Source of the DNA: Takakia lepidozioides
Taxonomy: Eukaryota; Plantae; Bryophyta
Reading direction: 5' to 3'
Assembly (NCBI GenBank): GCA_030704615.1
Contig: CM060731.1
Span: 49,290,001 to 49,354,000, forward strand
Length of the DNA stretch: 64,000 nt
Positions 8,394 through 41,653 of the stretch are shown here, piece by piece (position 1 is the stretch's first letter; the number at the start of each line of letters is the position of its first letter). The notes under the pieces were generated by a model, which saw only the letters and a program-made list of their open reading frames with translations, was not told the origin of the DNA and made no database searches. The position numbers were made by a program, and so were the translations under genes.

Positions 8394-10868
8394 CTCTCGC
8401 CTGCCTCGTCCTGGCAGCCACAACACCGACTGTCACTTTTTACCATGGTTAAACTCTGACCAGGGATCAGAAAGTAGACGTAATACACCTGTATTTGGTC
8501 ACCCACTATGTAGGTAGCTACGTCATCCCCATGGTGTTACATACATACATCGCATATTTCATTGTTTTTCGAAAGAAGAATGGCGGAGTGTTGCCAAAGC
8601 TCATCTCCGTAATTCATTGTATCTATCTATCTACGCCCAAGAAGTGAGGGGGAGTTGAACCCCCTTTTCTGCCCAGTATGCAGACACTTCTGCAAGCTGG
8701 ACCAGAGAGAGATATAAAGAGAAAACCCAGTAGATCCACAACAGCACAAAGAGGAAACGAGAATCCCAACCCTTTGCGCAACAATTGTACATTGCACCAC
8801 GGCTCGCTACAAATCCTTCTGATGACAGTGCCCTCACACCCAAAGGAGGAGCAGTAAGTATATTGTCCTCTCATTATTCACATAAGTTATCCCTTAGTTG
8901 GGTGTATTTTCATTTATATTAATTGAACCAACATACAACAATTGCTCGGCCAACAATCTTTGAGATGAATTTGGTGGAGGTGTGGCAGTCTCCAAACACT
9001 CAAAGATTCTTGTGAGTCGTGTTGATCGGAGCGCGTGTCAGGCACATACCCCACCTCTTCATCTGCCCAGACAATCTTCTCAACTCATCATGGATTTCCT
9101 TAATTCTGGGATGCAACTTGTCATCTACAACAAAGGTGTGCACCCTGTTGCCAACCTCAATGCAGTAGCGACCTGGCTCCCTTCTAACCCCTCTGACCTT
9201 CATCATTCTTCTCACCTTTGTAGTATCATCCCACCTATCAGCTGCAGCATAGATGTTTGACATAGCAACACATAAGTTGCGGCATCCTGTTCATCCCAGT
9301 TGAGAATAGATGTTGTCACACGTTCAGCCATCTCCACATTGCCATGGATTCTACAGGCACCAAGCAAGCCCTTCCACACCACAAACATCTGGATTGATTG
9401 GCATTTTATTAATCATGTCCACTGCCTCATCCAGTTGTCCCGCACGTCCAAGAAGGTCCATCATGCAGCCAAAGTGCTTTACTGGCAGGGTGACACCATG
9501 ATCTTGACTCACGGAATTGAAGTAGCGTCTTCCTTCATTCAGTAGGTCGGTGTGGCTGCATGCAAAGAGAACACACATAAAGGTGATCATGTCCCGGCTT
9601 CAAGCCGTTCTTTTGCATTCCTTCAAATAGTTGCAGGACCTCTCTATGACAACCATGCTGGGCATATCTTGCGATCATCGTATTCCACGACACCACATTT
9701 CATTCAGCCATATTGTCAAATACTCCCTTTGCATGCTCAATGCACCCACATTACTTAAGGACTGCCTCCACCTCGTACTCAGGTTCATTTTCATGATCCA
9801 ACAGCACAGGTGACGGACGCAACACTTTGCATACATATGCACCAGGGCAGTGTCTAGAATGACATTTGATACAATTCCAGCTTTGATGATGTCACCATGC
9901 ACCTCCTTGCCCTTTCCCAGGGCTGTCAGGCTTGCACAAGCATTGCAAACGCACACAAACTTGATGTGGTTGCACTTCACCCCTTTCCCCATCATTTGCT
10001 CATAGGTCTCCAAGGCCTCCATCCCGCGCCCCTGCTGTGCATATCCTGCAAGCATGGCGTTCCATGACACCAAATCTCGTTCAGTCATATTGTTGAACAC
10101 TCCCTCCGCATCGAGAGTATTGTTTAGAATCACATCTGGTACAATTCCAGCTTTGGCGATGCAACCATGCACCTCTTTGCCTTTTTCCAGGGCTGCCAGG
10201 ATTGCACACGCACACAAACATGATATGGTCGGGCTTCACCCCTTCCCCTATCATTTGCTCATAGGTCTCCAAAGCCTTCATCCCACGCCCCTGCTGTGCA
10301 TACCCCTGCAAGCATCGCGTTCCACGACACCACATCTCGTTCAGCCATAGTGTTGAAATTAACTCCTCTTTGCATCCTTAATGCACCCACATTTGGCATA
10401 CATGTCCACCAGGGCAGTGTTCATGATGACATCTGGTACAATTCCAGCTTTGACGATGTCACCATGGACCTCCAAAGTTCCCAGGTTTGCACACGCATTG
10501 CAAACACAAACAAATGTGATGTGGTTGGTTTTCCCCCCTTCGCACATCATTTGTTCATATGTCTCCAAAGCCTCCATCTCGCACCTTTCCTGTGCATATC
10601 CTGCAATTATCACACTCCACAAATACCACATCATGTTCAACCATATTGTCGAACACTCCATTTGCATCCTCGATGCACCCACATTTGACATACATGTCCA
10701 TCAGGGCAGTGTCCAGAGTGAAATCGGGTACAATTCCAGATTTGACGATGTCACCATGGACCTCTTTGCCCTTTTCCAGGGCTGTCAGGCTTGCACACGC
10801 ATTGCAAATGCAAACAAACGTCATGTGGTTGGGCTTCACTCCCTTCGCACATCATTTGCTTTTAGGTC

Positions 10869-11186
10869 TGATAACGACTATGCTACGATCATCTTAGAAT
10901 AGTTCTTGTTTTGTCTTGACTACCCTCTGTTGTATGAACCAAGAGACCTCAGTCCTTTTGACTAAAAGCTTTTATATTAAGACTGTAGATTAGGCCTAAT
11001 CAATAGGATTAAGCAATCTACAGGGATATGGTTTTATATGACGTTCATGGTTTAGCTATCTTTAAAACGATTACTTCGTAATCGTTTATGAAAGCATACC
11101 GTCGGACAACCTCTGTTGCATGTCTTAGGAAATGGGCAGTAGTGTCGATAGTCTGTTTTGTCTAAGTCATAGACCAGCGGTTAACA
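10869..11186. mobile_element. Solo LTR (318 bp) with a 5-bp target-site duplication
   Basis: Starts TGATAAC and ends GTTAACA (imperfect inverted termini), flanked by AGGTC at 10864-10868 and 11187-11191. Removing it restores PPR motif continuity. Confidence 0.85.
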
Positions 11187-12742
11187 AGGTCTCCAAAGCC
11201 TCCATCCCGCGCCTGTGCTGTGCACATCCTGCAATCATCGCACTCCACAACACCACATCACGTTCAGCCATACTGTCGAACACTCCATTTGCATCCTCGA
11301 TGCATCCACATTTGACATACATGTCCACTAGGGCAGTGTTCAGAGTGAAATTGGGTACAATTGCAGATTTGATGATGTCACCATGGACCTCTTTGCACTT
11401 TTCCAGGGCTTCCAGGCTTGCACACGCATTGCAAATGCAAACAAACGTTATGTGGTTGGGCTTCACCCCCTTCGCACATCATTTGCTCATAGGTCTCCAA
11501 AGCCTCCATCCCGCGCCCTCATTGCACATCCTGAAATCATCATACTCCATGACATCACATCACGTTCAGCCATATTGTCGAACACTCACTTCATACATGT
11601 CCACGAGGGTATTGTTCAAAATGACATTTGGTCAATTGCAGCTCTGACAATGTCGCCATGGACCTCTTTGCCCTTTTCCAGATTTGTCAGGCTTGCACAC
11701 GCACTGCAAATGCACAGAAACATGATGTGATTGGGCTTCACCCCTTCCCCCATCATTTGATCATAGGTCTCTAAAGCCTCCATACCACGTCCCTGTTGTG
11801 GATACCCTGTAAGCCTCGTGTTCCATGACACCACATCTTGTTCTGCCACGGTGTTGAAAACTCCCTTCGCATCTTTAATGCACCCACACTTGGCATACAT
11901 GTCCACCAGGGCAGTGTTCAGAATGACATCTGGTACAATTTCAGCTTTGACGATGTCACCATGGACCTCTTTCCCATTTTCCAGAGCTCCCAGGCTTGCT
12001 CACACATTGCAAACACAAACAAATGTGATGTGGTTGGGCTTCACCCCTTTGCGCAGCATTTGCTCATAGGTCTCCAAAGCATTTCTACCACACCCATGCT
12101 TGGTAAATCCTGCCAACATTATATTCCAAGTGACCAAAGATCGTTGAGGCATTTTGTTGAACACTTGGTGAGCATCCATGATGCTCCCGCACTTAACATA
12201 CATGTTGACAAGAGTGTTGAGGAGAAAAACATTTGGCGCGAATCCACTTTAGATAATTAATGTGAGTGTGCATCTGCTTTCCAGCTTCCAGACCTTCCAT
12301 CTTGATGCACTTAAGCAAGAGACAGACATACGTATCTGAAATGCCTTCTTGTTTAAAGTTTGTAGAGCCTCTGTCAGTCAGTCTGCCGCACAAAATATCT
12401 TTACATGCCCAGAAGTGCTAGAAGAGGCATTGTGGACTCCCTCTCTTTATCCTCTTTAAGAAGCTGCGGTGATGGTTGAGGTGCCTGATTTTATCAACCG
12501 TGCCACTGCAGCTGCTGCCTTTGGTTGACCATCTACCAATGCAGGTTTCTTGTAGCTATTGATCCACAGGGAATCTTAGGTAATCTGGAGCTTGAAGTCC
12601 GGCCCTCTTGGATGAATCTGGACTCACACTCTATCCCTGCTCCTTCAGCTACCTCTGCACAGATCATACATCCTTGCCTTGCTGCTACAAGCTGACAATG
12701 ACAGCCTAGATTTGTTCTAGGAAACACCCAACTCAACATATC

Positions 12743-13344
12743 TGTCACGGACATAGCCCAGAGGAACTTATCAGGAGTAAATACCAAAAGTTACCAAGTT
12801 ACCAAGTTACCGAGAGTTTATCAAATTACCAAGAGTAACTTAAGAAACTGCTCAGGAAGCTTCCTTTGGAGGAAAGTTCTCCATCAAGATACCTCATTTG
12901 TTTAAGGAAGCTTCTCCATCAAGAAATCTTTGTTTAATTTTGGAAACTGCTCGATCAAGAAACCTCTATAGGGGAAGCTTCTTAGGGAACTTTTTAGTAA
13001 CCAGTATATATAGGAGGCAAGACTGGACACTCTTCAGTCTCGCCAACACCAGTTCAAACTACTCTTGTTTCCAGTTCCCAGTACTCCAGTCCAGTTCCCA
13101 ATACTCTAGCCCAGTTTCTGGTACTCCAGTCCAGTTTCCAGTATCTGGTACTCCAGTCCAGTTTCCAGCATTCCAGTATTCAAGTCGTGTTCCAGTATCT
13201 TGTACTTTTGTTCATTGTTATAAAGATCGTCTTATTCATATTTACTCATCATGCATTCGGCCATGCCGACCTTGACTTCTTGTTTAGTCTTGTACCTCTA
13301 GTCTGATCTTTTGTTTGTGTTCAGTCATGTTCTCGTCCTTGACA
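12743..13344 (+). repeat. 5' LTR of the chromovirus (602 bp)
   Basis: TGTCACGGACATAGCCCAGA...CCTTGACA; TATA box at 13005-13012; internal ~20-bp CCAGT-rich repeats at 13071-13180. Confidence 0.92.
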
Positions 13345-13346
13345 GT

Positions 13347-13357
13347 TTGGCGAGACT
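13347..13357 (+). promoter_or_regulatory. Primer-binding site of Tf1 self-priming type
   Basis: TTGGCGAGACT, 2 nt after the 5' LTR, is the exact reverse complement of AGTCTCGCCAA at 13036-13046. Confidence 0.75.
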
Positions 13358-16300
13358 AAAGTTTGTTCCTTAGTTAGTTAAGATGGAAGGCACATTTGCG
13401 GAAATGGTCGCCACATTGCAGAGTCTTCAGCTCCAGATGCAAGAACAACGTTTGGAGAGAATGATAGAGAGAGAGTTACAGAGACAAAGATGCGAAATCT
13501 TCGACAAAGAGTACGTCCAGCTTCCGTTTATGCTGCCGAATTTCGACAACTTATGTGCAACCTCGACTGGAATGAGAAGAGCGTCATTAGTCAGTTTCGA
13601 TGTGGCCTAAAATATGATGTAAAAGATTTGTTGCTGACAATGCCAAACGTGAGTACACAGAGCGGATTTATCACCAAAGTCATTGCATGCGATAATCGTT
13701 TGTTCGAAAGACGTCAAGAAAAATGATCTGGATGGTCAACAACGCACCATACCGCTGCTACTACGACACCAAATACAACGATCCATCAGACATCCGGTAA
13801 TGATCCTATGCAGATTGATGCTGTCCGATTCAAGCCATTGATGCCACAAGAAAAACAAAGACGACGCTCAAATGGATTATGCCTTTATTGTGGAGAAGAT
13901 GATCACATAGCATTAAACTGCCCCAACAAGAGAAGATTCAAAACTCGGGGCACAACTCAAGTATTTGATATGAGGAGGTCGGAAACGAAGATGTCCAGTC
14001 ACAGTAGGAACCATGTGGCTGGAAACTCCAAATTCCTCACAAAAAAAATGTCTCTTTCTACCTCCAGACCCTGTACCTTGTTTCACAGTTCCAGTAAAGA
14101 TCAGGATGCAAAATCGAGACATCTCCCTATAAGCACTTTTGGACTCGGGCGCTTCAGCGTGTTTTATTGACAAAGACTTTGCGAAGCAACACAATTTAAC
14201 GCTCGTAAAAAAGAAATTTTCGGCCTCTGTTGAAGTCATCGATGGACGACCGTTAGCATCATGAAATATTGACCATCAAACTCGACCCCTTGAAGTGAAG
14301 CTTAAAAATCAAGCATCACAGATTGTTTTCAATGTCATCCAGTCTCCAACGAATCCTGTGATCCTTGGACTTCCCTGGTTTGTACTTCATAATCCTGACA
14401 TCGACTGACAATCACGAAAATTTTCGGCAAGACAAAAATGCAAAAGTACTAAAGGTATTCAACCCATGTTTCTTGGAGCTAGAGCCTTCATGAGAGTTAC
14501 GAAGAAAGACGCGACATTTGCGCTTTATGCGACTCCGATCAAAACCATAACAGACCAAGGTACTTCGACATTACCCACTCAATATCAAGATTTCAAGGAT
14601 GTCTTCGAGAAGAAAAATGCAGACTTGTTGCCAGAACATCGACCTTATGATTGTGCAATTGAGTTGCAAGAATGAGCTCAACCACCATTCGTCCCGATCT
14701 ACAATTTATCTCAGACGGAGCTGGCTATTTTACGCGAATACATTGATGAAAATTTGTCAAAGAATTTCATTCGACATTCGAAATCACCCGCGGGAGCACC
14801 TATTTTATTTGTGAAGAAGAAGGACGGATCATTACGCATGTGTGTGGATTATCGTGGGCTCAACAAAGTCACTATAAAAAATCGTTACCCACTACCGCTG
14901 ATTTTCGGACTTCTCGAACAGCTTGGACGAGCAAATTTTTTCACAAAGATCGACTTGAGAGGAGCTTCACAAGGTATGGACATTTCGAATACAGTGTTAT
15001 GCCTTTTGGTCTTACAAATGCTCCAGGAATTTATTCAACACATGTTGAATGACATCTTTCGAGAATTTTTAGATGACTTTATAGTCATCTATTTGGACGA
15101 CATTTTGATATTTTCACAGAATGAAAAAGAACATGGTCGCCATGTACGTATTGTCCTTGATAAATTGAGGGAAAAATGACTATATGCCAAGTTGGAAAAA
15201 TATCTATTCCACCAATCTGAAGTCGAATTTTTGGGCTACATTATTTCCGACAAATGAGTCTTTATGGATCAAAAGAAAATACAAACCATCATCAAGTGGA
15301 TTAAACCAACTTCGGTCTGAGATGTACAATGTTTTCTAGGATTTGCAAATTTCTATAGAATCTTCATCAAGGAAATTGCTGCACCAATGACACGAATCAC
15401 AGAGAAGGACAAATTTGTATAGGACGAGAAGGCTGACCAAACATTTGAAAGGCTGAAGCAGACATTTACAACGACTCCAATACTGGTACATGCAAACCCA
15501 TCTAAACCGTTCTTTTTGGAAGCAGATGCATCAGACTTTGCACTTGGCGCGGTACTCTCTCAATACGGTACAGATGGCCGACTTCACCCTGTTGGTTTTC
15601 GTGCTCGCAAATTTTCCGCTGCGGAGATCAATTATAAAATCCATGACAAAGAACTTTTAGCGATTATCGATGCTTTTGAGGAGTGACGTCATCTATTGGA
15701 GGGAGCTCAACATCAGGTCACTGTCTATACCGATCACAAAAACCTTGAGTATTTTATGAGTGCTCGTATTTTTGAATCGACGTCAAGCGAGATGGAGTAT
15801 GTCACTAGTATGTCATTAGCAAGGTTTGATTTTGTTGTTACCTACTGTCCCGGACATCTTCAAGGAAAACCAGATGCTCTTTATCGACGATCGTATCTTG
15901 CGCCAATGGAAGGGGATGCAGCTTTTAACCAACAGAAATCCATCATCTTGAAACCAACAAATCTCCAATTGAATATGCTATCCATGTCCACCTATGACGA
16001 TGTAGAGATCATAAGGAGATTCAGAAAGCACTGAAGAGCGACCAATTTGCTATAACACTACGAAGTCAACTAAATTGACCTCGAGACAACCCACATGTTA
16101 CAAACGACTTTGAATTCAAAGATGACTTACTTTATTTCAAGAGACTTCTTTATGTACCTCCAAGACCTACACGACTTCGAATTCTTCAAACTCCGACTGT
16201 AGGACATTTCGGCTTCAACAAAACAATGGAATTGATATCCAGAGACTATTGGTGGCCGCAGATGTGGAAACTCGTGAAAGAATTTATAAAATCTTGCGAC

Positions 16301-18027
16301 ACGTGTGCTAGAGCGAAGGGACCACGACAATGACCTTACGGCCTTCTTCAACCATTATCCATTCCCAAGGGTCTATGGTCGTCCGTGTCTATGGACAATA
16401 TTACGGACCTTCCAATTTCCAAGACCACCGATTCAATCCTTGTTATTGTAGATCGTTTTACGAAGATGACACATTTCATTCCATGTAGGAAGACGGTTAC
16501 CGGCGAGGAAACTGCAAGACTCTTCCTCAATAATATTTTCCGCTTTCATGGACTCCCGAAGGACATCGTATGTGATCGAGGACCACAGTTCATATCAAAT
16601 TTCTGGAGGGGATTATTTCACATATTGGATACTAAGATCAACATCTCTACAGCTAATCATCCACAGACTGATGGTCAAACCGAATGTGTAAATCAGATTT
16701 TGGAGCAGTATCTTCGCTGTACAATAAATTATCACCAATATAATTGGACGGACCTTCTGTCATTGGCTGAGTTTGCCTACAACAACACTATGCATTCTTC
16801 AACCAAGTAAACTCCATTTTTCTCTAATTATGGTTATCATCCTCGAGCAAATCCTTTCCACATGAAAACTGTTAGAAGCCCTGCTACAGAAAACATTGCT
16901 ATTCATCTTGCTACGATTCACAAGGAGCTTATATTCCACCTCGCAGAAGCTCAAAAACAATACAAGGAGTATGCAGATCAACGTCACCAATTTCAACCCC
17001 AGTTCAAGGTCGGAGATCGTGTGTGGCTTCTTTGACATGACATACAAACCTCGCGACCATAAAGGAAGTTGGATTATCAACGCTTGGGACCATTCAAAAT
17101 TATTCGACAAATAAATCCGGTCAGTTTTCGGTTTGGATTCCCACGAAGTATGCGCATCCATCCAGTCTTTCATGTTTCATTATTAGAGTGTATCATCCAT
17201 CGAATATTCTAGGGAGAGTTTCCGTACCACCTCCACCAATCGAAGTCAATCAGGAAATTGAGTATGAAGTCGACGAAATCCTAGACTCTCGTATCAAGTA
17301 TAAACGTCTTGAGTATTTCATATATTGGAAAGGCTACGACATCAGCGAACGAACGTGAGAACCTTCATCCAACCTCGCCATTGCATCTGATAAAGTCCAA
17401 GTTTCATCAACGATATCTAGCTAAGCCCCGAGCTACACGTCAATAAGACGTCACAACGATGATGTCAGCCAAGTTAGCTTCAAGGTGAAGACTCCACATT
17501 CAATGTACCTGATACAAGCTAAGGAGGGAGGAGCACCACACATCAGTATATATAGTACACTTCTAGCACTCGTGCATCTTGTATTGACAGCATGGAGTTA
17601 ATAGATACATTGGAGTTGTCGCTTACCCAATTACCAGATCACCGTTTCGACTCTCACGACCTTCAATATCACGCCGACGCTCTTGAGACGATGGGCCACC
17701 AATGCGACGCGTACTTCCTCGTCTGGACCCCGTACGACGACAAGTGGAGCCTACTCGAAGTCTGATAATTCTATTGGAGGTTGAGGCTTCGGACCCAGAG
17801 GGCAACGAAATCATGTTTGAAGGCAACTTCGAAAATCAGAATGCTCAAATCACTGCGTGGTTCCAAATTCAAGGTGTTGGACACTATCGATGGTTGCAGT
17901 GACTTATAAATCATTTAAGTCAAGAACGAAGAGCCGAATACTTGGCAAGTACCATTCGCCGGATTTTGGATTTTCTCCAACTCTAAGCAAGTTCAAGATT
18001 TTACCGCTCATCGAGGAACTCGGCGCT

Positions 18028-18040
18028 AGAGGAGGGGTGA
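18028..18040 (+). promoter_or_regulatory. Polypurine tract
   Basis: AGAGGAGGGGTGA immediately before the 3' LTR. Confidence 0.85.
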
Positions 18041-18577
18041 TGTCACGGACATAGCCCAGATGAACTTACAAGAAGTAAATACCAAAAATTACCAAGTTAT
18101 CAAGTTACTGAGAGTTTATAAAATTACCAAGAATAACTTGGGAAATTGCTTAGGAAGCTTCCTTTGGAGGAAACTTCTCCATCAAGAAACCTCTATAGAG
18201 GAAGCTTCTTAGGGATTTTCTTAGTAACCAGTATATATAGGAGGTGAGACTGTATACTCTTCAGTCTCGCCAACACCAGTTCAAACTACTATTGTTTCCA
18301 GTTCCCAGTACTCCAGTCCAGTATCGATTTTGTTTTTGGCTCAATTTTGTTCTGCGGCTTCCAGCATCCCACGGCTACTCCCCCGCCAAAATTTGGACTA
18401 GCATTCTAGTATTCAAGTTGTGTTCCAATATCTTGCATCTTGTTCATTATTATAAAGATCGTCTTGATTCCTATTTACTTATCATGCATTCGGCCATGCC
18501 GACCTTGACTTCTTGTCTAGTCTTGTACCTCCAGTCTGATCTCTTGTTTGTATTCAATCATGTTCTCGTCATTGACA
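18041..18577 (+). repeat. 3' LTR of the chromovirus (537 bp)
   Basis: TGTCACGGACATAGCCCAGA...CATTGACA; aligns to the 5' LTR with substitutions and indels. Confidence 0.92.
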
Positions 18578-19018
18578 ATATTCTTATGCTCAATTGCATC
18601 TGCCACTCTCTGTAATCCAACAGGCATTGACCTTTTCGCATCGTTGTCCCACCATTGACTGGGGTCAGAAAAATATTCATTCCATAGCTTCTCCTCGTCT
18701 CTGTTATTGACGGCGTGAAGCACTTCCAGCAAACACCCCAACCCTACTTATCACACTAGTTCCCACTTCTTGTGTGTGCTGCTTGTGTCTATAGTTAAGT
18801 AATGTCGGATTGGTCTGTGAGAACCACCACGGTGCAGCTGAGCAGGTAGAGATTGAAACACGAACTGCTAAGACCAACCTGATTCTCCCAAGAACCTTGT
18901 AAACATAGGGAGAATACCAAATCATGGTACTAAGAGCCCCCATTTGCAGGATGGACAAAGTTCTTCACATCGTACATTAAGAAAAGCCACATATTGCGAT
19001 TGCGGTTGTCATACCATC

Positions 19019-19748
19019 GTGAGAGCTCCTGCGCACTGTACTCATAATCTGCAAATGTCTCCATCTGCGATCGGCGTATGAAACCCCTCCTGCAGTTCAA
19101 AAAGATCATGAATCGAGTAAGTCCGGACAGTTCCGGAAAACTTGGCACGAGGAGTTCTATCGTTTTCCGGGCGGGCACTCCGGGCAAATTCCAAAAATTG
19201 TGGCGACGATGACGTGACGACGATGACGAGGCACAACGTTGGACAACCCGTTGTGAGAGCTTCTGCGCGCTGTACTCATAATCTGCAAATGTCTCCATCT
19301 GCGATCGGCGTGTGAAACCCCACCTGTAGTTAAAGAAGATCATGAACCGGATAGTCCAGGCAGTTCCGAAAAATTTGGCACGAAGAGTTCTATTGACGTT
19401 TTTTGGGCGGGCAGTCCGGGCAAATTCCAAAAAATTTGACAACGACGTTGCAATAAAACGTGGCGACGATGACGTGGCACTATGACACCCTATATCTGCT
19501 CTACGCTAAACTAGCTCCTACAGTTCAAGAAGATCAAGAAATGGGTAATCCGGGCAGTTTCGAAAAACTTGGCATGAGGAGTTCTATTGGCGTTTTCCAG
19601 GCGGGCAGTACAGGCAAATTCCAAAAAATTAGACGACGATGACGTGGCGACGAAACATGGCTACAAAACGTGGCAATGCTGACATGGCACTATGACACCC
19701 TATATCTTTTCTACGCTAAACTAGCTTCCGACCTTCGGTCGTCGCTAG
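19019..19748. repeat. Array of ~3 degenerate 210-235 bp units ending in a CTAG-bounded hairpin; possible non-autonomous element
   Basis: GTGAGAGCT.CTGCGC.CTGTACTCATAATCTGCAAATGTCTCC at ~19019 and ~19253; GGCAAATTCCAAAAA three times; TATGACACCCTATATCT twice; terminal CTAGC-TTC-CGACC-TTC-GGTCG-TC-GCTAG at 19721-19748. Confidence 0.7.
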
Positions 19749-30222: not shown

Positions 30223-31394
30223 CGGCAGGGTGAATGCACTGTCGTCAACTCGGTGCAAGTGTCTCACTCAACGTTGTCCAATGTAATACAATCCGCCACG
30301 ATGAACATTGGAACATCTCAAGATGTCAGGAGTACTTTTATAATGACAAGCTCCTTCATTCGGAAAGAAACCAGCGTGTAGTAAACAGATGGAGCTGGTG
30401 GGCGAAGGTTGATGGTCTCGTGAAGTGTGTAGAAGAAGGTGAAATGTCAATGATCCTTGTTTTGAATCAATGGCCATCCGAACGAAGAGAGTACGTGCAA
30501 ATGTAGACAGGTGATAAATCATGCTGGTGAAGTGCAGCTTTGTGGAGAATTTTCTTCCCCTGAAGAATGCGGCGTTGGCCCTCCTGACTTTGTTTCGCGC
30601 TGGAAGTCATGGCCGAGATATGATCTTGGATGCGAATCCTACCGGACACTTCAATCTTGGATTTTGAACTGCATCCAGCGACGGACTGGATTTAAGCTCC
30701 ACTACGTAATGATGACCCCTTCTGGGATTGGGGCATATAAGATATGCTTCATTTTGAGCTAAGTCGCTGCACAGTTGTCAGGACCTGTAAAGTTGGTAAT
30801 TCGTTAGTTGAGAGCAAGTTGCTGATGCCTGCAAGACTACTGCGTGTGCTACTCACTCACTCATATCTGCATTTGTATTGGACATGTACACTTCTTATCT
30901 GATATCGTGTAAGACACTATATACTAATTCTGCTTTGTCTTAGCTCATAGGCCCTTGCAAGGTACACCGTGATTGCTCCTGGATCCTGATCTCTGACTTC
31001 TGCTTCCAACTAAATTCCTCCCTCCCCCTTGCAAAAGTCGGATGATGTTGTAAGCTTATATCGCCTTTCCTCTTCAACCTGCAAGCTGTTGTGGGTCTGA
31101 TTCTGAAGCTCTTGCCTCACAATCTACATTGCCCACTTCCTGTCCATGAGACTGCTGATGTAACTGACAGGCAAACTTGAGATGTTGCCACCTCTTAGTT
31201 GATTAGAAACGTTGAAGGTGCTCACTCTTCTTGAGCAATTTAGGCTGGTTGTACACCTGAGAATTCATGTAGCCATACTCAGAAATCTCCTACTTGGAAG
31301 TTCATGCAATGGGATCGTTACACTGAACATGGAACTGCTCTTCAGATGAGATTGGAAAAGCAGGTGCTGGGCTCGACAATGAGGAATTTCCAGC

Positions 31395-31555
31395 CTGCTT
31401 GCGCAACCTCCGGTGTACACAGGCAGAGGCCATAATAACCCTTCTTGTTGACGTTCCCAAGGCCTCCCCATGTGTCCACCTGACTTGGCAAACCCAAGCC
31501 CAACACTCTTGAAAGCCATTGCTATGATGCCTCCTCTGCCTGCAGGGAAACAGGA
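31395..31555 (+). pseudogene. Orphan remnant of the leader exon of the PDF-PPR family
   Basis: TTGGCAAACCC...GCCATTGCTATGATGCCTCCTCTGCCTGCAGG aligns to TTGGCAAGTCC...CCCATGGCTATGACGCCTCCCCAGCCTGCAAG (37452-37513); CAGGCAGAGGCCATA resembles CAGGGAGAGGTCATA (37318). Confidence 0.55.
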
Positions 31556-32222
31556 CAACTAGATTTTCACTTCATCGCATACCAAGCTTGAGTTGCACTA
31601 CAGCCCTTTCCCTGTCATCTCCTTCAGCATCAGTCTTAAGTGGTGATGAATGGAAAGGTTTGTCCTTCAGTTGGAGAGAGATTTCAGTGAGGACAAAAAT
31701 TTGAACGAAATTTAGTACTGCAATAAACTGTCATCCTTCCTTGTTTTGGGCTTTGGATGACACAGACACCAAGTATCATAGTATAGCACAACTGCTGTTT
31801 TGAACAAAGAGAAATACTTGATTTGCAGCATGGAATTCGAACAAAACGGTCCCAAAAGCAACCCATGCCACTGATCCATGCAGAAGGAGCGATGTGGTGG
31901 AATTATGTGTCCATGCTTTCCAGCCAGCACTAGCAATCACCCTCAAGAATTTGGGCATTCATTGGGATTCTGGGGATCCTTAGACAAAGCTTTTCATTCA
32001 TCACTTCTCTTATTCATGCCTACTGTTCCCTGCTCTCTCTAGAGAGCTCTGCAATATCGGGTTTTGTGACAGCTGCTGCTATTCAGTGATTCCCAACATG
32101 GGCAGCTCCCTGTGGTACAGACTGTTCACAATGATTGTTACAAACGAATGCTTTCATCTTTAGTATTTGCTTCCAAAAATAGTGATTCAATAAAAAAAAT
32201 CCAATCATGCATGTTGCTGCTT

Positions 32223-35200
32223 TCACCAATAATCCCCACATGAACACAACCCATCTTGGAAATGGTGAAAGCGGTTTGCATCCCGCACAACAACTACTCG
32301 TCCAACCATCTTGGAGATGAACTTGGTGGCGGTGTGGCAGTCACCACACACCCGAAGGTTCTTGATGACACGGATAGGTGTCCCAGGGGGAGTGCTGATC
32401 AGCCCAAAAGCAATTGCCAGCCTCTCACTGTGGTAATACAGAGAACCTTCCTTCCTCTCGCCCTCCACATCACCCCGCAATACAAAGCGCGTGTCAGGCA
32501 CATACCCAGCCTCCTTCATCCACCCAGACAACCTCTTCAGCTCAGCATGGATTTCCTCAATTCTTGGATGTGATTTGTCTTCTACAACAAATGTGTGCAC
32601 CCGCTTGTCCACCTCAATGCAGCTGCGCCCTGGTTCCTTTCTGATACCTCTGTCCTGCATCATTTTTCTGACCTTTGCTGTATCATCCCACCTGCCAGCA
32701 GCAGCATAAATATTCGATAGCAGCACATAAATTGCAGCATCCTGTGGATTCCCCTTGAGAAGGCATTTTGCAGCACGTTCTGCTACCTCGACATTACCAT
32801 GAATTTTGCAGGCACCAAGCAAGGCCCCCCACACAGTAGCACCTGGTTCAATTGGCATGTTGATAATCAAGTCCTCTGCCTCATCCACTTGGCCTGCACG
32901 GCCAAGGAGGTCCACTATGCAGCCAAAATGCTCCACTGTGGGAATGAGTCCATGATCTTGACTGATGGATTGAAAGTAGTGGCAGGCTTCATCCACTAGG
33001 CCCACATGGCTACATGCAGAGAGCAGAGATACAAAAGTGATACCATTCGGCTTCAAGCCTTCCTGTTGCATTTGTTCAAATAATTGGAGGGCCTCCTTAC
33101 CACACCCATGCTGACCATATCCCGATATCATTGCACTCCACGAGACTACATTTCGTTGAGCCATATTTTTGAATACTTGAAGTGCATCCTTCATACTTCC
33201 GCATTTGGCATACATGTAAGCAAGTGCAGTCTCCAGGATGATATCTGGTGCAATTTTAGCATTGCTTATGTCAGCATGGACTTCTTTGCCCTTCACTAGG
33301 GCTGCCAGGTGTGCACATGCATTTAAAACACAAATGAATGTGACCTTGTCAGGTGCCACTCCTTTTTGTATCATTTGCTCATATATTTCGAAAGCCTCCT
33401 TACCACCATGCTGAGCATATCCTCCGATCATGGCATTCCATGAGACCACATCCTGTTCAGTCATATTATCAAACACTCGACGCGCATCCTTCATGTTCCC
33501 GCATTTGGCATACATGTTGACAAGGGCAGTCTCCAGAATCATATCTGCAGCTATTCCAGCTTTGATGATATCAGTATGTACCTCTTTGCCCTTTTCCATG
33601 GATGCCAAGCTTGCACACGCATTAAGAAGGCAAATGAATGTCACCTTGTCTGGTATCACTGCTTCCTGTATCATTTGCTGATAGATTTCAAATGCCTCCC
33701 TACCACACCCAGGCTGAGCATATCCTGCAATCATTGCATTCCATGAGGGCACAGTTCGTTGAGCCATATTGTCAAACACTTGACGTGCATCCTTTAAGCT
33801 CCCACATTTGGCATACATGTCAACAATGGAATTCTCGAGAATAATGTCTGGCTCAATTCCAGCTTTCATGATATGGGTGTGGACCTGTTTACCCTTTTCC
33901 AGAGCTCTTAGGCTGCCACATGCATTGAGAACGCATATAAATGTGACCTTGTCAGGCATCACCCCTTCCCATATCATATCCTCATACATCTCAAAAGCCT
34001 CCCCACCATACCCATGCTGAGCATATCCTCCAATCAGGGCATTCCATGAGATCACATCTTGTTTAGACATATTATCAAACACCTCGCGTGCTTTTTTTAT
34101 GTTCCTACATTTGGCATACATGTCGACAAGGGTATTCTCAAGAATGATATCTGGCTCAATTCCAGCTCTTACAAAGTCAGCATGCACCTCTTCACCCTTT
34201 TCCAGGACACCTTGGCTGCCACACGCATTGAGAATGCAAATGAACGTGACCCTGTCAGGTGCCACTCCTTCCTTTTTCATAAGCTCATACATCTTGATCG
34301 CCTCCTGACCACAACCCTGCTGAGCATATCCAGCGATCATTGCGTTCCATGAGACCACACTACGTTGAGACATGTTGTCAAACACTTCACGTGCATCCTT
34401 TATGCTTCTACATTTGGCATACATGTCGATGAGGGTATTCTGCAAATTTATGTATGATATAATTCCAGCTTCCATAATGTCAGCATGGACCTGCTTGCCT
34501 TTCTCTAGCACTCCTAGGCTGGCACATGCATTAAGGACACAGATGAATGTAACCTTGTCGGGCGTCACCCCTTCCCGTATCATTTGCTGATAGATCTCGA
34601 AAGCCTCTCCACCACACCCATGCTGAGCATATCCTGTGATCATCGCATTCCATGAGACCACATCACGTTGAGCCATTTTGTTAAATACCATCCGTGCATC
34701 CTTTAAGCTCCCGCATTTGGCATACATGTCAATAAGGGCAGTCTCCAGAATGACATCTTGTGCAACTCCAGCTTTGATGATGTCAGCATGGACCTCTTTG
34801 CCATTTTTCAGGGTTCCTAGGCTGGCACAGGCCTTGATAAGAGAAATGAATGTGATCTTGCTGGGCGTGACCCGTTCCTGTCTCATTTGCTGATACATCT
34901 CAAAAGCCTCCCTACCACACCCGTGCCTTGCATATCCTGCCATCATTATAGACCACGCAAACACATCTCGTTCAGGCATTTTGTCAAATGCTTGGCGTGC
35001 ATCCACCACACTCCCGCACTTGGCATACATATTGACAATGGTATTGTGTAGAAAGGAATTTGGCTTGAAACCACTTATGATAATGTGAGCGTGCACCTGC
35101 TTTCCCATTTGAAGGTCTTTAATATTGGTGCACCCTTGCAGGAGACAGACATAGGTATCAGAGTCTGCTAGAATGTCTTGTTTCTTCAAAATATGCAGTG

Positions 35201-36427
35201 CCTCTTTCAGTTGTCCTGCCCTACAGAATGTCCTCACATTCTCACAAGTTCCAGAAGAGTTCTTGCTGACTCCCTCTCTTGCTCGTCTTTCAACAGCAGC
35301 GGTCATGGTCGAAGTGCCCAACAATTGTGCCTGATTCATCTTTGCCAGCCTGCATGACTCAAAACCCTTGGTTACAAACCTTTCCAGATGAGCTCACATG
35401 ATATATCTCAAAACTCCTAGGTACTTCAAGGAAGATCCTTTCCATTAAGATAGACTTGGTGAATGTCAAAAAGGCTACAAAGCTACAGCAGCTCCCTACT
35501 TTGAGAATAAATGGGGCAATTCTATCTGTTTGAGTTGAAGCCCTGAAGCCTCACAAAACCATACCCACTGGATTCTTGGCTTGGAGCTCCATGGTGTACA
35601 TCAAGATTAGAACCATCACAATATTGTTCTTGACCTCGTATAGTGGAAACTAGCTCTGCTTTCACCCAAGGAGGGTTCATCCAACTCTCAATCCAAAGGG
35701 CTTCATTTGAGGGCTTATGTCTGAAGTCTGCTGATCTTGGACTTCTCTGTAAAACAGCAGGGAACACCTTGAACAGCCTCCTTTAGACAGTGTAGACCAC
35801 TTTTGCTGCTTCCTTCCGTGAAGAGAAAATTGACATTAATTTAACCAACTCCAGATCCAACAGTATTGTGCCAGGTTCAGTCACAAGCCCTTGACGAACA
35901 ATTTCCTGTCCTTATGAAGCTAGCCTCACCTTATCAAACCTGTTGTCCCACCAGTGCGCAGGATCTGAAAAGAACTCCTGCCATAGTCGTTCTGTGTGTT
36001 CCTTGTCCATTGCTTGACCTGTGTGAATGCAGTGATAGACCCTGTGAACCCGCTTCGTCTCACCCTCTATTGAGAGGCTTTAGTGTCTAAACGTTTAAGC
36101 AGCCCCTAATTGGCCTGGGTCCTACCGAGGAAGGCTACGCTTTCCATAAAATCCACTTCAATGGCTGTAAAGGAAATCTGCCTCCTCTAGGTCTCTCTCA
36201 TACACTGGATGGAAAGAAATACGAGTATCAAGAAATTGCAGATATTTCCGGAGGTGATCGAAGGCGTAGAAGATGTTCATCACATTCCTGAAGTTAGAGG
36301 AAATGGGTGAAAGTACTTGTTGAGATGGGTCGAGGACAGATTTTCAGGGACCGAAATTTTCCGTCAAGAATTACGTACTTGTACCTTCCTGCAGTATCCC
36401 TGGAGGCTCGGGAGGGGCAATTGTCAT
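32223..36427 (-). CDS. Intact PLS-PPR-DYW C-to-U RNA editing factor (23 PPR motifs, E1, E2, DYW) with an N-terminal OSB-type PDF motif; exons (36427-36385), 36018-35930, 35746-35565, 35349-32223
   Basis: 1038-aa ORF L-S-(PLS)6-P2L2S2-E1E2-DYW with PG box, HSERLA, CGDCH and CSCGDYW. Upstream GT-AG exons splice in frame to add MDKEHTERLWQEFFSDPAHWWDNRFDK|RSPRSADFRHKPSNEALWIESWMNPPWVKAEL...SSG|LAK. The true start codon (36427 or 36010) is uncertain. Confidence 0.92.
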
Positions 36428-37307
36428 CACTCGCAAAGGTCTCGGGCACTGCATTGCCCAAGCTCGAGATCCCATTCCACTCCACAGCCTGGCCCGTTAA
36501 TGTGAGACAAGATGTGAGGCTTCCTGCTCTTTCACAACAAGGAGAAGACATGACCTTGGCTACGGTCTCTCCCTGCGAGTTGAGGAGCGGACCGCGCTGC
36601 CATTCATTTGCCTGCTTGATAGAGCTAAGACGAATCGGGAAGCAAGACCAACAAAGCAACTACAACGCACAATTAGGTGGTTGTGCTGGCTTGGTCCAAG
36701 CCAACTGCAGTCGTAACTGTGGACCTTGTAGACCACCAGATAGAAGTGCTAAACCCAAATTACGAGGAGAAGCCCAGAGGGATTCCATGACATAGAAGCA
36801 AGTGACGGGCACACATCTACAATAAATGGACAGAGGCTCAAGGCAAGAATTGGACTGGGCAAGAAATCCGACTGTAGCATGTACTTGGGCTACCTTTTTA
36901 TCCGATGCTAACTGCTCATCGGGGCTTTCTAGAGTTTCAGCTCCCACATTCACCGGGAATGCCTCTTCGGATAAAGCGTGGTTACTTTCGCTTGCGGCCC
37001 GCTTAGAAGACAGGTGAGAGAGAGATTAACATTTCCTCTTTCACTGTCGTCTCTGATCTCCTTAATGCAACACATCGGTGAGGGATTGACGTTTCTAAAT
37101 AGACATTAATAGCGGCTATGAAAATATATTACATGAGGCCGTCTTCCTTGGAGAATCTCTTCAAGTGAATCGTAGTTTTCGGGCTGTTGGTTGGGACCCC
37201 ACTTTCTTCCTCAATATTATATTCTGTTTTCTATTGTCAAGCTCTTGAGCTTTCCGTGGACGGTATAGAGTTTCTGCCTATCTCCTCTTGCCTCCGCGGG
37301 CACAGTG

Positions 37308-40300
37308 ATGGCAGTGTCCCATGCTTTCCTGAGCGGGCAGGGAGAGGTCATAGTCAAAGCACCGTGTCGGCCCTGCGATGAACGGGAGGGTGGCCTCACA
37401 TCTTTTGGCACATTAGAGGGACAGACTGTGGAGCTGAAATGGGCATCCCCTTTGGCAAGTCCGATTCTGAGATCCTTACATCCCATGGCTATGACGCCTC
37501 CCCAGCCTGCAAGAATATCAAAGGAAGGTACAAACACACATACATGCTCGTTTTTCTTGGTTCTGTAAATATTGTCCATCCAGGTTTTAAATTGTCCTTG
37601 ATCCATCTCTCAGCTTAAACCACACTCATCTTGGTTGAAGAAATTGAATTATGGTCATTACAAATTGAAGATTTGCAGTTCTTGGACACAGGTCAAGCAA
37701 TGAGCACAGAGGGGCTCTGGCAGGAGTTCTTCTCAGACCCTTCACAGTGGTGGGACAACGTGTTTGATAAGGTGAGCTATCTTCATGGAGGAAGCTAAAG
37801 AGTTTGTGAGCGACTGCCTGTGACTGCAGCTGGCATGATGATATTTTCTAAGCAGGACTAATATGAGGTCTTCATCGTGAAGAGCAATTTTGGTTGTGAC
37901 GTAACGCTTTGGTTGAGGTCATGGCTGCTTAGCTGCCTGGTGGTTTTCACAGAAAAATCTGAAGTCACCAGACCTCAGTGTTAAGCGAACAAAGGAGGTC
38001 CTTTGGATTGAGGGTTGCTCTGCATTTCCTTGGGTGGACGCAGAGCTAGCTGCCCTGATGCAAGGTCAAGAACATGCTGATACTGCCAAGATCAAGGGAC
38101 AGCAAAGAGCTCCAGGCCAAGAAAACAATGGGTATTGTCCTAATGAGGATTAAGGAGTTCAACTCAGATAGATAGAATTTGGTACAGATAATATCGACTC
38201 CAGTAGGTTTGTAAATCTGTCAATATGTTACAAGTTGCCAGTCTTTGTGACGAGCTGATCATTCCTAGTATCTAGTACCCTTGAGATTAATTATGAGAGT
38301 TTTCAGTATAACGGTTTGTAACTAAGAGTTCTCAGTCATGTAGGATGGCAAGGTTGAATCAGGCACAGTGGTTTGTTGGCCATCAGACTGGCGGCAGGGG
38401 TAGCACCCACACAATCCCCACTGCTTCTGAAAGGGGACCAAGAGAAGGAGTCAACAAAGACTCTTCTGGCACTTGTGGGGATTTAAGGACATTATGTAAG
38501 GCAGGACGACTGAAAGAAGCGCTGCATATTTTGAACCAACAAGACATTCAGGCAGACTCCGATACTTATGCCTGTCTATTTCAGGAATGTATCAACGTAA
38601 GAGGCTTAGCAGAAGGAAAGCAGGTGCACGCCAACTTAATACAGACTGGATTCAAGCCAAACATCTTTCTATTCAACACCCTGGTAAAAATGTATGCCAA
38701 TTGCGGGAGCGTGGTGGATGCACGCCAAGTTTTTGATAAAATGCTGGAGCGAGATATGTTTACATGGAACATAATGATAGCTGGGTATGCCAAGCATGGG
38801 GATCTCAGGGAGGCTTTTGAGATCTACAGGCGAATGCAACAGGAAGGGGTGACACCTGACAGGGTCACATTCATTTGTGTTCTCAATGCATGTGCCAGTG
38901 TAGGAGCCCTGGAAAAGGGCAAGGAGGTCCATGCTGAAATCATCAAAACTAATAATGCGCCATATATCAACTTGGAGAATACCCTTGTCAATATGTATGC
39001 CAAATGCGGGAGCATAAAGGATGCTCGGCAAGTGTTTGACAAAATGGTTGAACGAGATGTGGTCTCATGGAATGCCATTATTGGAGGATATGCTCAGTAT
39101 GGGTATGCTAGGGAGGCTTTTGAGATGTATGAACGAATGCAGGAGAAAGGGGTGATACCCGACCAAGTCACTTTCATTTGCATTCTCAGTGCTTGTGCCA
39201 GCATGGGATCCCTGGATAAGGTGAAAGAGGTCCATGCTGCAATCATCAAAACTGGAATTACTTCATATATGAATTTGGAGAATACCCTTGTGAACATGTA
39301 TGCCAAATGTGGTAGCATGAATGATGCCCGTCAATTGTTTGACAATATGGCTCAACGCGATTTGGTGTCATGGAGTGCAATGATTGCAGGATATGCTGAG
39401 CATGGCTGTGGTAGGGAGGCTTTCAATATCTACGAGCAAATGCGACAGGATGGAGTGAGACCTGACAGGATAACATTCACGTCTGTTCTCAGTGCATGCG
39501 CCAGCCTAGGAGCCCTGGAGAAGGGCAAAGAGGTGCATGATGACATCATCAAAACTGGAATTGTGCTAGACATCATTTTGGAGACTGCCCTTGCTGACAT
39601 GTATGCCAGATGCGGGAGTTTAAAGGATGCGCGTCGAGTGTTTAATGGTATGGCTAAACGGAATGTGGTCTCATGGAATGGCATGATTGCAGGATATTCT
39701 CAGCATGGGTGCAGCAGGGAAGCCCTCCAACTATTTGAAAAGATGCAACAGGAAGGCTTGAAGCCGAATGGTGTCACCTTCACGTCTGTTCTCTCTGCTT
39801 GCAGCCATGTGGGCCTAGTGGATGAAGGCTGTCATTACTTTGATTCCATGAGTTTTTATCATGGCCTCACCCCTACAGCAGAGCATTTTGGCTGCATGGT
39901 GGACCTTTTGGGCCGTGCAGGGCAATTAGACGAGGCACAGGATTTCATCGAGAAAATGCCAGTTGAACCAGATGCTTCAGTCTGGGGGGCCTTGCTCGGT
40001 GCCTGCAGAATTCGTGGCAATGTGGAGCTAGCAGAACATGCATCAAAATGCCTTCTCAAGTGTGATCCACAGCATGCTGCAACTTACGTGCCTCTATCAA
40101 ACATCTATGCCGTGGCTGGGAGGTGGGACGATAGAGCGATAGAGCGAAGGTGCGAAAATGATGGAGGAGGATAGAGGTGTCAAAAAGGAGCCAGGGCACA
40201 GCTGCATCGAAGTTGAGAATCAGGTCCATACATTCTTTGTAGAAGACAAATTGCATCCACAAGTCAAGGAAATCCATGCTGAGCTGAAGAGATTGTCTGA

Positions 40301-40590
40301 GCAGATGAAGTGGGCTGGGTATGTGCCGGACACGCGTTTTGTATTGCATGAAGTGGAGGAGGAGCAAAAGGAATTTTCTCTTTGCCGTCACAGTGAGAAG
40401 CTGGCCATTGCTTTTGGGCTGATCAGCACACCCCCTGGAACGCCCATCCACATCATTCGGGTGTGTGGTGACTACCACACCGCCACCAAGTTCATCTCAA
40501 AGATTGTTGGGCGAGCTGTTGTTGTACGGGGAGGCCAACCCCTTTCACCACTTCCAAGCGGGGGTTTGTTCTTGTGGGGAGTACTGGTGA
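37308..40590 (+). CDS. PDF-motif / PLS-PPR (14 motifs) / E protein with a broken DYW domain; exons 37308-37527, 37692-37771, 37953-38131, 38344 onward (open frame ends 40174; ancestral DYW ends 40590)
   Basis: All exons join in frame (phases 1, 0, 2), giving LWQEFFSDPSQWWDNVFDK|KNLKSPDLSVKRTKEVLWIEGCSAFPWV. 609-aa PPR ORF; frameshift in E2 from a GATAGAGC duplication; DYW remnant with CGDYH and a further frameshift before CSCGEYW*. Confidence 0.88.
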
Positions 40591-41653
40591 CATAGGCACA
40601 ATGCATGCACAAACGAAAGCGCACTGCTTCAAACATGAGGCTGAAAGACCATAATCTGTCATTTAATCATTTATGCAAATTAATGAGATGATTCAATGAG
40701 GACAGTCAATACTGCACTTTCTGCAAGGTGCCCATGGTGATAATCACACTTCAAGTACAATCATGGAGAATATTAGCAGCCAAACTTACTGCAGAGGATT
40801 TGCTGGCAGAATGGAAGGGACAGTGGTATGACAAACCAGAATGAACTTGGTAATTGTTGTTGCAAGGGCAGCGATTGGTTATAGTAGACGAGAGTGCTCT
40901 CGTTCTGGCACAGGAGCAACAAGTCTGGCCGAAGAGGCTTAGTGATTACTGGCCTTGCATATCTGCCTACCATGGTTTTCATGGCATAACTGCAAACTTC
41001 AGGGGACTCTTTTGTTGTAGAGTCAAGCAGTCAACAAGGCTTACCACAAGTCTTTGGTGGTCATCCCTCACCTTGTGAGAAATGCAATGGTTTCAGGCAA
41101 ATATGGAAAGTGGCCAATGATCTCCCTCCTTTAGAAAGGGCCTGAATTGCAAGCTATGGCTTCCAGGTTTCCCTTTATGAAGGAAATAAAGAAACCTAGA
41201 CCCAAACATTGGGGTATGGAACCTGTTCTTCGTACAGACCGAGCTCGGTCAAAACTTGCAATCGTAGCAGTAGAGAGTTCGGCTGCCTACCACCTCTGTA
41301 CTCGTCCATCCACGAGTGCTTTTGCTTCAAATTCTACGAGTTCTTCTCTCCTTTGAAATATACTCCAGTTCATCAGGTCTGTTTTGAATCATAGGAACAG
41401 TTTTTTAACTGTCCTTCCATTCTTCAGAAGATCCCTCACTCTTAGACCTAGAATTTCTGCCAAGATACTGTAGTGGGTTTCAAAGATTTGGACAATGTCA
41501 ACTCTTCCATGCGCGAAGCACACGCGACCAGCGCTACTTCGAAATTTTCAAACCAAAAACTCATACTCGAAGTTTATCTCGATTAATAACTCCTGAAAGA
41601 GATGAGAGGAGTCTCCGGAGAGGTGGGCTCCAAGTGGATGAACAAGCCGATGG

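Follow-up and report, generated by a model that had tools for sequence, protein, structure and literature searches.

Gene A, a locus on the minus strand of the window (the whole 64,000-nucleotide stretch of Takakia lepidozioides DNA that was analysed), is probably a nuclear gene with three coding exons, and likely one more upstream, whose product would be an organellar C-to-U editing factor carrying an N-terminal PDF module. In plant organelles C-to-U editing is carried out by PPR-DYW proteins, now under development as programmable base editors, and the OSB (organellar ssDNA-binding) proteins, in which the PDF module is known, protect organellar genomes from ectopic recombination.

The gene model of an earlier sequence-only reading, with two short exons upstream of a 1038-aa open reading frame (ORF) on the minus strand, was seen in the sequence, and the GT-AG borders with phases 0 and then 2 that it had assigned to these exons agreed with our reading (Table 1). 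Exon 1 is entered through the acceptor acacag/GT at 36018 (phase 1), contains an in-frame ATG at 36010, and is left through the donor AAG/GTGAGG after 35930 (phase 0). Exon 2 lies between the acceptor ttttacag/ and the phase-2 donor GG/GTATGG, past which read-through leads to a stop at 35522, and exon 3, preceded by tcatgcag/, opens at 35349 and shares its frame with the ATG at 35339. When gene A was compared with its head-to-head neighbour, paralog B, the exons were 82% and 70% identical and the introns 52% and 62%, intron 1 reaching only 52% against 82% for exon 1.

Table 1. Features of gene A and of the neighbouring PDF-PPR copies, in positions of the window.
Feature	Position	Strand	Description
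Candidate upstream exon	36385..36475	-	ATG-started open frame of 30 codons; phase-1 donor GGAAG/GTACAA; low confidence
Exon 1	35930..36018	-	First half of PDF motif, through W-W-D-N-R-F-D-K; positions 4-26 of PPR-borne profile, 41 bits
Intron 1	35747..35929	-	183 nt, GT..AG, phase 0; interrupts PDF motif
Exon 2	35565..35746	-	Second half of PDF motif (S-A-D-F-R-H-K ... A-L-W ... N-P-P-W-V) and linker of ~28 aa; positions 27-71 of PPR-borne profile, 51 bits
Intron 2 (predicted)	35350..35564	-	215 nt, GT..AG, phase 2
Exon 3	32223..35349	-	Linker, ~24 PLS-class PPR motifs (aa 26-846), E1, E2, DYW deaminase
1038-aa ORF	32223-35339	-	Intact PLS-PPR, E1, E2, DYW protein
E1	32613-32801	-	In exon 3
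E2	32529-32600	-	In exon 3
DYW deaminase	32226-32507	-	HxE at 32424-32432; CxxC at 32337-32348
Stop codon of gene A	32223-32225	-	End of exon 3
Paralog B	37692..40610	+	Head to head with gene A; same three-exon layout; pseudogene
Copy C	8880..18699	-	Fossil PDF-PPR gene; PPR, E and DYW pieces down to 8880
Copy C, PDF first half	18643-18699	-	Part of fossil gene
Copy C, PDF second half	12474-12620	-	Contains stop codon; continues without change of frame into PPR sequence from 12485

Gene A is a PLS-class PPR-DYW gene, with tandem P-L-S repeats, E1 and E2, and a C-terminal DYW domain with HxE and CxxC. In the Pfam search of the 1038-aa ORF the PPR_2 (E 5e-135) and PPR (E 1.5e-119) models were matched together with E_motif at aa 847-909 (E 1.5e-22), Eplus (E+) at aa 914-937 (E 3e-6), and DYW_deaminase at aa 945-1038 (E 1.2e-40). 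The intact DYW domain claimed earlier was confirmed, both zinc-ligand motifs being found in the ORF (HSERLA at aa 970 and CGDCH at aa 998), and the C-terminus is DYW itself. The repeats are arranged as seven PLS triplets at 101-aa spacing plus P2-L2-S2, so the PPR array that had been proposed stood, but not its count of 23 motifs, about 24 having been counted. By sequence, gene A is nearest to DYW-type PPR proteins from Diphasiastrum, Ginkgo, and Cryptomeria (46–56% identity).

The identity of the N-terminal module was assessed with an HMM built from OSB proteins only (17 PDF motifs of 7 angiosperm OSB-family proteins, 5 of which are named OSB1/2/3 by their sources). Exon 1 and exon 2 were treated as separate pieces throughout the analysis, apart from one pooled count of substitutions. 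Exon 1 matched positions 2-26 of this HMM with 28 bits (E 1.5e-7) and exon 2 positions 26-59 with 31 bits (E 2e-8); no other six-frame piece from the window scored as high, and the two matches abut at the splice junction, so that the PDF identity suggested earlier, including the OSB-profile check proposed for it, was borne out in both exons. A profile of the PPR-borne PDF motifs matched 1195 representative proteins, including source-named OSB1/2/3 proteins, and the best 110 of these 1195 comprised 28 with Pfam SSB and 10 with PPR. The OSB and PPR-borne PDF profiles detect each other at E 1e-20 to 1e-40. The assignment of the exon 1 and exon 2 peptide as a true OSB-type PDF motif, present as one unit, is supported by these profile comparisons, which go beyond a chance resemblance. 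The peptide retains 11 of the 12 residues that are invariant in PPR-borne motifs, and the near-invariant proline of the P-D-F signature is replaced by alanine (S-A-D-F-R-H-K), a proline which one natural OSB2-like motif likewise lacks. The two PDF exons had no Pfam match because Pfam contains no PDF-motif model. The AF2 model of the module reached pLDDT of ~90 over residues 1-45; Foldseek gave no match to it at E <= 0.001 and VIA-align a best Z of 2.8, and no known fold can be assigned to the predicted module, which by itself does not prove the fold to be novel.

Short PDF-only proteins (100–250 aa) were numerous among the profile matches, although many may be fragments, and together with the read-through ORF ending at 35522 they could suggest that intron 2 stays unspliced and the PDF exons form a separate small gene for a PDF-only protein of ~100 aa beside an independent PPR-DYW gene. 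This is very improbable: the tail gained by reading through shows homology to the beginning of the PPR region, which marks it as a decayed remnant and not as a conserved C-terminus, paralog B retains the same donor and acceptor, and a separate promoter or terminator is not in evidence.

Gene A and the OSB proteins (Arabidopsis OSB1-4, of which OSB2 is pTAC9) have in common the ~50-aa PDF module and its conserved residues, and the PDF motif of a liverwort OSB gene is interrupted by the same phase-0 intron. The PDF motif of OSB1 is sufficient for ssDNA binding (PMC6963530), and OSB1 and OSB2 prefer ssDNA to dsDNA or RNA (PMC4166229). In OSB proteins, however, an SSB-like OB fold stands in front and the PDF motif is C-terminal, whereas in gene A the PDF motif precedes a PPR array and a deaminase. 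The gene A ORF and exons gave no match to an SSB/OB fold, and the OB profile was matched by none of the 17 PPR-borne proteins versus 62 others; since the PDF module is shared without the OB fold, gene A is not a member of the OSB family. With the PLS-class PPR-E-DYW editors (Physcomitrium PPR56 and PPR65, Arabidopsis DYW-type proteins) gene A has in common the PLS triplets, E1/E2, and DYW with HxE and CxxC, and differs from them in a PDF module predicted to be spliced on from two extra 5′ exons; to our knowledge, and in the literature searched, none of the characterised PPR-DYW editors has such a module. PPR-SMR proteins (GUN1, pTAC2) and PRORP with its NYN nuclease also join a PPR array to a second nucleic-acid-related domain, and some are nucleoid-associated, but the module of gene A is small, N-terminal, and of an ssDNA-binding family, with no sequence relation to SMR or NYN.

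A PDF motif N-terminal to the repeats was present in 18 of the best 120 PPR matches, and annotated PDF-PPR proteins were found in Diphasiastrum, Sphagnum, Riccia, and Calypogeia. Judged from sequence, the true family of gene A is this set of unnamed proteins (Diphasiastrum complanatum O6H91 loci, Sphagnum spp., Riccia sorocarpa, and Calypogeia fissa), which have the same architecture and motif, are annotated merely as hypothetical or PPR, and in many cases begin with a presequence and contain one to three PDF units. Their PDF module keeps the OSB-invariant Trp, Asp, Arg, Lys, and Phe; gene A differs from these relatives in its one unit, in alanine for the signature proline, and in an extra linker intron. 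In the tree 16 of 17 PPR-borne motifs cluster together with no OB-fold protein among them. The intron positions of gene A are matched in the Sphagnum and Calypogeia PDF-PPR genes: phase-1 and phase-0 introns flank the first-half exon in both of these and in the Riccia OSB gene, and the phase-0 intron inside the PDF motif has the same position in one moss gene, two liverwort genes, and Takakia. Among the OSB genes compared this intron is common only to the liverwort OSB, and in Populus OSB1 both PDF motifs lie in one exon. By these comparisons the PDF-PPR(-DYW) architecture is supported as real and recurrent, and gene A belongs to an old family of liverworts, mosses, and lycophytes. The architecture, put forward earlier as a candidate new one, is consequently not new in the sense of being unseen, dozens of unnamed database proteins already carrying PDF-PPR; the accompanying statement that no characterised PDF-PPR-DYW protein is known agrees with the literature searched, in which no paper linking the PDF motif with PPR or DYW or describing the fusion was found.

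Because the acceptor at 36018 is in phase 1, another exon is expected upstream, and in the Sphagnum and Calypogeia relatives an upstream exon is joined at the phase-1 acceptor. Without such an exon the protein would start with the acidic M-D-K-E-H, unlike a transit peptide. The tblastn search with the N-termini of 24 relatives found nothing past the PDF exons and no presequence homology; a strict donor scan upstream gave two poor candidates, and a relaxed look gave the one listed in Table 1, the phase-1 donor of which fits the acceptor of exon 1. The same donor string within a homologous block occurs upstream of paralog B (37393-37533, blastn), though the frames of A and B diverge further upstream of the donor, and the region upstream of copy C has nothing in common with that upstream of gene A.

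Two of the three PDF-PPR copies in the window are dead. Paralog B has at least two frameshifts in E2/DYW, its zinc-binding CxxC is changed to C-G-D-Y-H, and its PDF motif lacks the invariant Arg and Phe. One further PPR fragment lies in the same cluster. The borders of intron 2 are common to gene A and the pseudogene paralog B, and the intron is absent from copy C, from the Calypogeia gene, and from Sphagnum; in copy C the second half of the PDF motif and the PPR array stand in a single frame with no intron between them. Judging from linker homology, intron 2 probably covers what is left of a second, decayed PDF unit. Gene A seems to be descended from a two-PDF ancestor, the second unit of which would have decayed and would now be removed by splicing as intron 2. 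The dN/dS of A against B was 0.14 for exon 1, about 1.4 for the second-half exon, and 0.26–0.36 for PPR and DYW; with a pseudogene as partner this comparison is not decisive, and most of the changes in the second-half exon look to be on the side of B.

Some of these observations are also compatible with the PDF exons being relics, the working gene then being the single-exon PPR-DYW ORF, with transcription starting downstream of these exons, translation starting at ATG 35339, and its own N-terminus serving for targeting. An ATG of its own opens the ORF, and the next ~30 residues are rich in Ser, Thr, Ala, and Arg; the decayed second unit that intron 2 appears to cross shows that degeneration has already affected part of the 5′ region; the signature proline is lost, the second-half exon is without visible constraint between A and B, and no convincing presequence exon was found upstream. 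Still, we consider the loss of the PDF exons from the product rather unlikely, since the two exons have open frames, canonical splice sites, and 11 of 12 invariant residues, exon 2 joins exon 3 in a compatible frame in A as well as in B, the dN/dS of exon 1 is low, and in the relatives the homologous region is internal to the protein and not at its start.

It can also be considered that the locus in its entirety, as a recent and silent duplicate, makes no product and is turning into a pseudogene like both its neighbours. Its clustering with two decayed copies and a PPR fragment would agree with this, as would the protein collection, where no near-identical entry was found for the full ORF (best 56% identity) or for its first 200 residues (best 47%), and hence no transcript-derived protein of this copy. 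Nevertheless, such silence is improbable given a 1038-codon frame free of stops with all E/DYW catalytic and zinc residues present, the dN/dS of PPR and DYW, which stays low even against a pseudogene partner, and the specificity positions of the S motifs, where (read by eye) the residues vary between repeats otherwise 50–70% identical.

For the favoured reading, in which the three exons together encode an editing factor, the PLS-class PPR array would read the RNA upstream of the target C, the DYW cytidine deaminase with its intact zinc ligands would perform the edit, and the PDF module may add sequence-independent single-stranded nucleic-acid binding. Along the lines of the tethering proposed earlier, this binding might keep the editor at the nucleoid or the transcriptionally active chromosome, with editing of nascent RNA as the result; alternatively, it might add affinity for the unfolded RNA substrate. 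An RNA-binding role is unsupported by data because published OSB work shows preference for ssDNA over RNA. That the PDF module holds a sequence-specific DYW deaminase on nucleoid ssDNA, transcription bubbles, or R-loops, coupling editing to transcription and at the extreme leading to deamination of the displaced DNA strand, seems a long shot.

An ancient conserved fusion of the OSB module with an editing factor in liverworts, mosses, and lycophytes is unreported as far as searched, and this family-level point is independent of the gene A copy. Should the module bind ssDNA, it would offer a direct and testable way to ask whether early land plants couple editing to the nucleoid and to transcription; as an RNA binder it would provide a small natural affinity tag with which designer PPR editors could be improved; and if the displaced DNA strand is deaminated, RNA editing would be linked to organellar C-to-T mutation. 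As no solved relative was found for the predicted fold of the module, a solved structure of it would be new as well. The locus itself adds to the family one intact-looking member and two fossils, which illustrate the gain and loss of PDF units.

The open reading frame (ORF) of gene A, the PPR-DYW gene on the minus strand, encodes a complete PLS-class PPR protein, in which the array consists of seven P-L-S triplets and a terminal P2-L2-S2, HxE and CxxC are found at aa 970 and aa 998, respectively, and the C-terminal residues are DYW. The S-type motifs recur with a 101-aa period from aa 104 to 709, and the 101-aa units (32802-35264, minus strand, aa 26-846) are unusually alike, with mutual identity up to 72%. 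The likeness of these triplets, taken with the lower number of PLS units in the head-to-head neighbour, paralog B, suggests that whole triplets were gained and lost recently. The amino acids at the S-motif specificity positions, compared by eye, still vary from unit to unit.

Features of gene A, its related copies and adjoining sequence (a slash marks the splice border)
Feature	Position	Strand	Remarks
Gene A ORF	32223-35339	minus	1038 aa
PPR repeats of gene A ORF	aa 26-846	minus	Pfam
E motif of gene A ORF	aa 847-909	minus	Pfam
E+ of gene A ORF	aa 914-937	minus	Pfam
DYW_deaminase of gene A ORF	aa 945-1038	minus	Pfam
Exon 1 3' end of gene A	35930	minus	donor AAG/GTGAGG
Exon 2 of gene A	35746-35565	minus	acceptor ttttacag/, donor GG/GTATGG
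Exon 3 acceptor of gene A	before 35349	minus	tcatgcag/
Candidate upstream exon of gene A	36475-36385	minus	30-codon frame, phase-1 donor GGAAG/GTACAA, counterpart upstream of paralog B
Paralog B	37692 to ~40610	plus	head to head with gene A; same PDF-exon, PDF-exon, PPR-exon layout and splice sites
Copy C	18699 down to 8880	minus	fossil PDF-PPR gene
Copy C PDF first half	18643-18699	minus	exon
Copy C PDF second half	12474-12620	minus	bears a stop
Isolated PPR fragment	19834-21147		437 aa

The sequence-only reading had placed two short exons with GT-AG borders and intron phases 0 and then 2 upstream of this ORF, and had taken their peptide for the PDF motif, the ssDNA-binding module of plant organellar OSB proteins. 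The exons, borders and phases are indeed present, and the frame enters the ORF four codons upstream of its ATG. Because Pfam contains no model of the PDF motif, own profiles were built. An HMM built solely on OSB sequences, with 17 motifs taken from seven OSB-family proteins of angiosperms, was run on all stop-to-stop pieces of the window. Its best match was gene A exon 2, with 31 bits (E 2e-8) over profile positions 26-59, and its second best was gene A exon 1, with 28 bits (E 1.5e-7) over positions 2-26; these matches bear out the proposed identity of the peptide. In a second profile, aligned from 20 motifs borne by PPR relatives of the gene A ORF, exon 1 covers positions 4-26 and exon 2 positions 27-71; searched against 1.84 billion representative proteins, this profile gave 1195 matches at E <= 0.001, including proteins named OSB1, OSB2 or OSB3 at source from Populus, Asparagus, Anthurium, Euphorbia, and Amborella. 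Among the best 110 of these matches Pfam SSB was present in 28 and PPR repeats in 10. Of the 12 residues that never vary among PPR-borne motifs, 11 are conserved in gene A; in place of the remaining one, the proline of the P-D-F signature, it has alanine.

Intron 1 is strongly supported at sequence level, since the matches to the two PDF half-motifs abut exactly at the proposed splice junction. The support for intron 2 consists of canonical sites, a fitting frame, and identical sites in paralog B, and no intron was found at this position in the relatives or in copy C, the third PDF-PPR copy. Comparison with two-PDF proteins of Diphasiastrum hints at its origin: exon 3 opens with sequence similar to the end of the second, repeat-proximal PDF unit, and what follows the exon 2 donor on read-through is similar to the beginning of the PPR region, so the ancestor of gene A probably had two PDF units, of which the second decayed. 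According to the favoured model this remnant would be spliced out as intron 2; less favoured is the alternative that the 5' part of gene A, including the PDF exons, is out of use and the ORF is translated from its own ATG at 35339. Between gene A and paralog B the exons are better conserved (82% and 70% identity) than the introns (52% and 62%), with dN/dS of 0.14 in exon 1, 0.36 in the first 200 PPR codons, and 0.26 in E2-DYW; the value of ~1.4 in the PDF half of exon 2 says little about gene A, since most replacements in this exon, judged against the family consensus, lie on the paralog B side.

The PDF motif stands N-terminal to the repeats in 18 of the 120 best relatives of the gene A ORF (17 from the lycophyte Diphasiastrum complanatum and one from the liverwort Calypogeia fissa), and more representatives occur in Sphagnum species and Riccia sorocarpa, all of them annotated as hypothetical or plain PPR proteins. 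The claimed PDF-PPR-DYW architecture is real and supported at family level, while its novelty holds only in part, as unnamed database proteins already have it. Gene A combines known kinds, a PPR-DYW editor and an OSB module, and its interpretation as such a fusion is considered probable, with moderate confidence. In the Calypogeia and Sphagnum compactum genes an intron in phase 1 separates the presequence exon from an exon of 27 codons, whose last residues are W-W-D-x-R-x-E-K; then come a phase-0 intron and an exon which opens with the P-D-F-K-H-K part and runs on into the PPR array. The gene A acceptor acacag/GT-CAA at 36018 is identical to theirs in phase and in the next Gln codon. The first-half PDF exon of a Riccia fluitans OSB gene (Pfam SSB) is flanked by the same two intron phases, and this common arrangement makes it most likely that the module was transferred as DNA between the OSB and PPR families at an early stage of land-plant evolution. 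In Populus OSB1, unlike this liverwort gene, the PDF motif is uninterrupted, so the intron seems to have been lost from OSB genes toward angiosperms. In a poorly resolved maximum likelihood tree (133 motifs, 68 columns) 16 of 17 PPR-borne motifs fell into one group with no OB-fold proteins inside, and two changes of the PPR versus OB label suffice, which is compatible with a single capture of the module. The same tree contains a separate protein class (P0121-P0125 and a clade of ~36 motifs) of 700-1160 aa with 9-13 tandem PDF motifs, which form their own group; in a local test most of these proteins had no OB-fold or PPR match.

The acceptor at 36018, being in phase 1, implies a further upstream exon, and a start at ATG 36010 would give an acidic N-terminus, unlike a transit peptide. 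A homology search with the N-termini of relatives revealed no presequence exon. Upstream of genes A and B lies an inverted pair of 144-nt blocks (36379-36520 and 37393-37533; 70% identical), each terminated by the donor-like GGAAG/GTACAA, whose phase would suit the acceptor of the first PDF exon, and they may represent an upstream exon common to both genes. Given a protein-level look-alike near 31265-31558 on the other strand, the blocks may instead be a dispersed repeat. No near-identical protein to the gene A product was present in the protein collection.

Three PDF-PPR copies are found in the window. Paralog B is a pseudogene, as indicated by two or more frameshifts in E2/DYW, the change of CxxC to C-G-D-Y-H with loss of a zinc cysteine, and a PDF motif without the invariant Arg and Phe. 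In copy C ~6 kb separate the two PDF halves, and the second half continues in the same frame directly into PPR sequence without an intron, making this fossil an independent demonstration of the PDF-PPR fusion in this genome. Just upstream of its PDF exon is a tandem repeat (19019-19726, minus strand, period ~210 nt, copies 73-84% identical), which the isolated PPR fragment adjoins.

The AF2 model of the PDF module, based on 133 aligned motifs (mean pLDDT 81, ~90 over residues 1-45), predicts a helix, three short strands, and a second helix, and no solved structure matched it significantly. Its invariant positions are occupied by aromatic and basic residues, which do not differ between OSB and PPR contexts. 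For ssDNA binding the PDF motif of OSB1 is reported to be sufficient (PMC6963530), and OSB1 and OSB2 reportedly prefer ssDNA over dsDNA or RNA (PMC4166229). The most economical inference is that the PDF module of gene A would act as an accessory single-strand-binding unit, which would either tether the editing factor to the nucleoid or raise its affinity for unfolded RNA. PPR proteins go unmentioned in a 2026 survey of 182 OSB genes (PMC13393729), and a full-text literature search, with most subscription journals outside its coverage, found no description of a PDF/OSB-PPR/DYW fusion. Downstream of the PPR cluster, at 51769-53566 (plus strand), lie two ORFs with matches to the At4g14310-type 8-bladed propeller (Pfam PF25465, E 4e-26 and 2e-51), probably two exons of a single ordinary gene.
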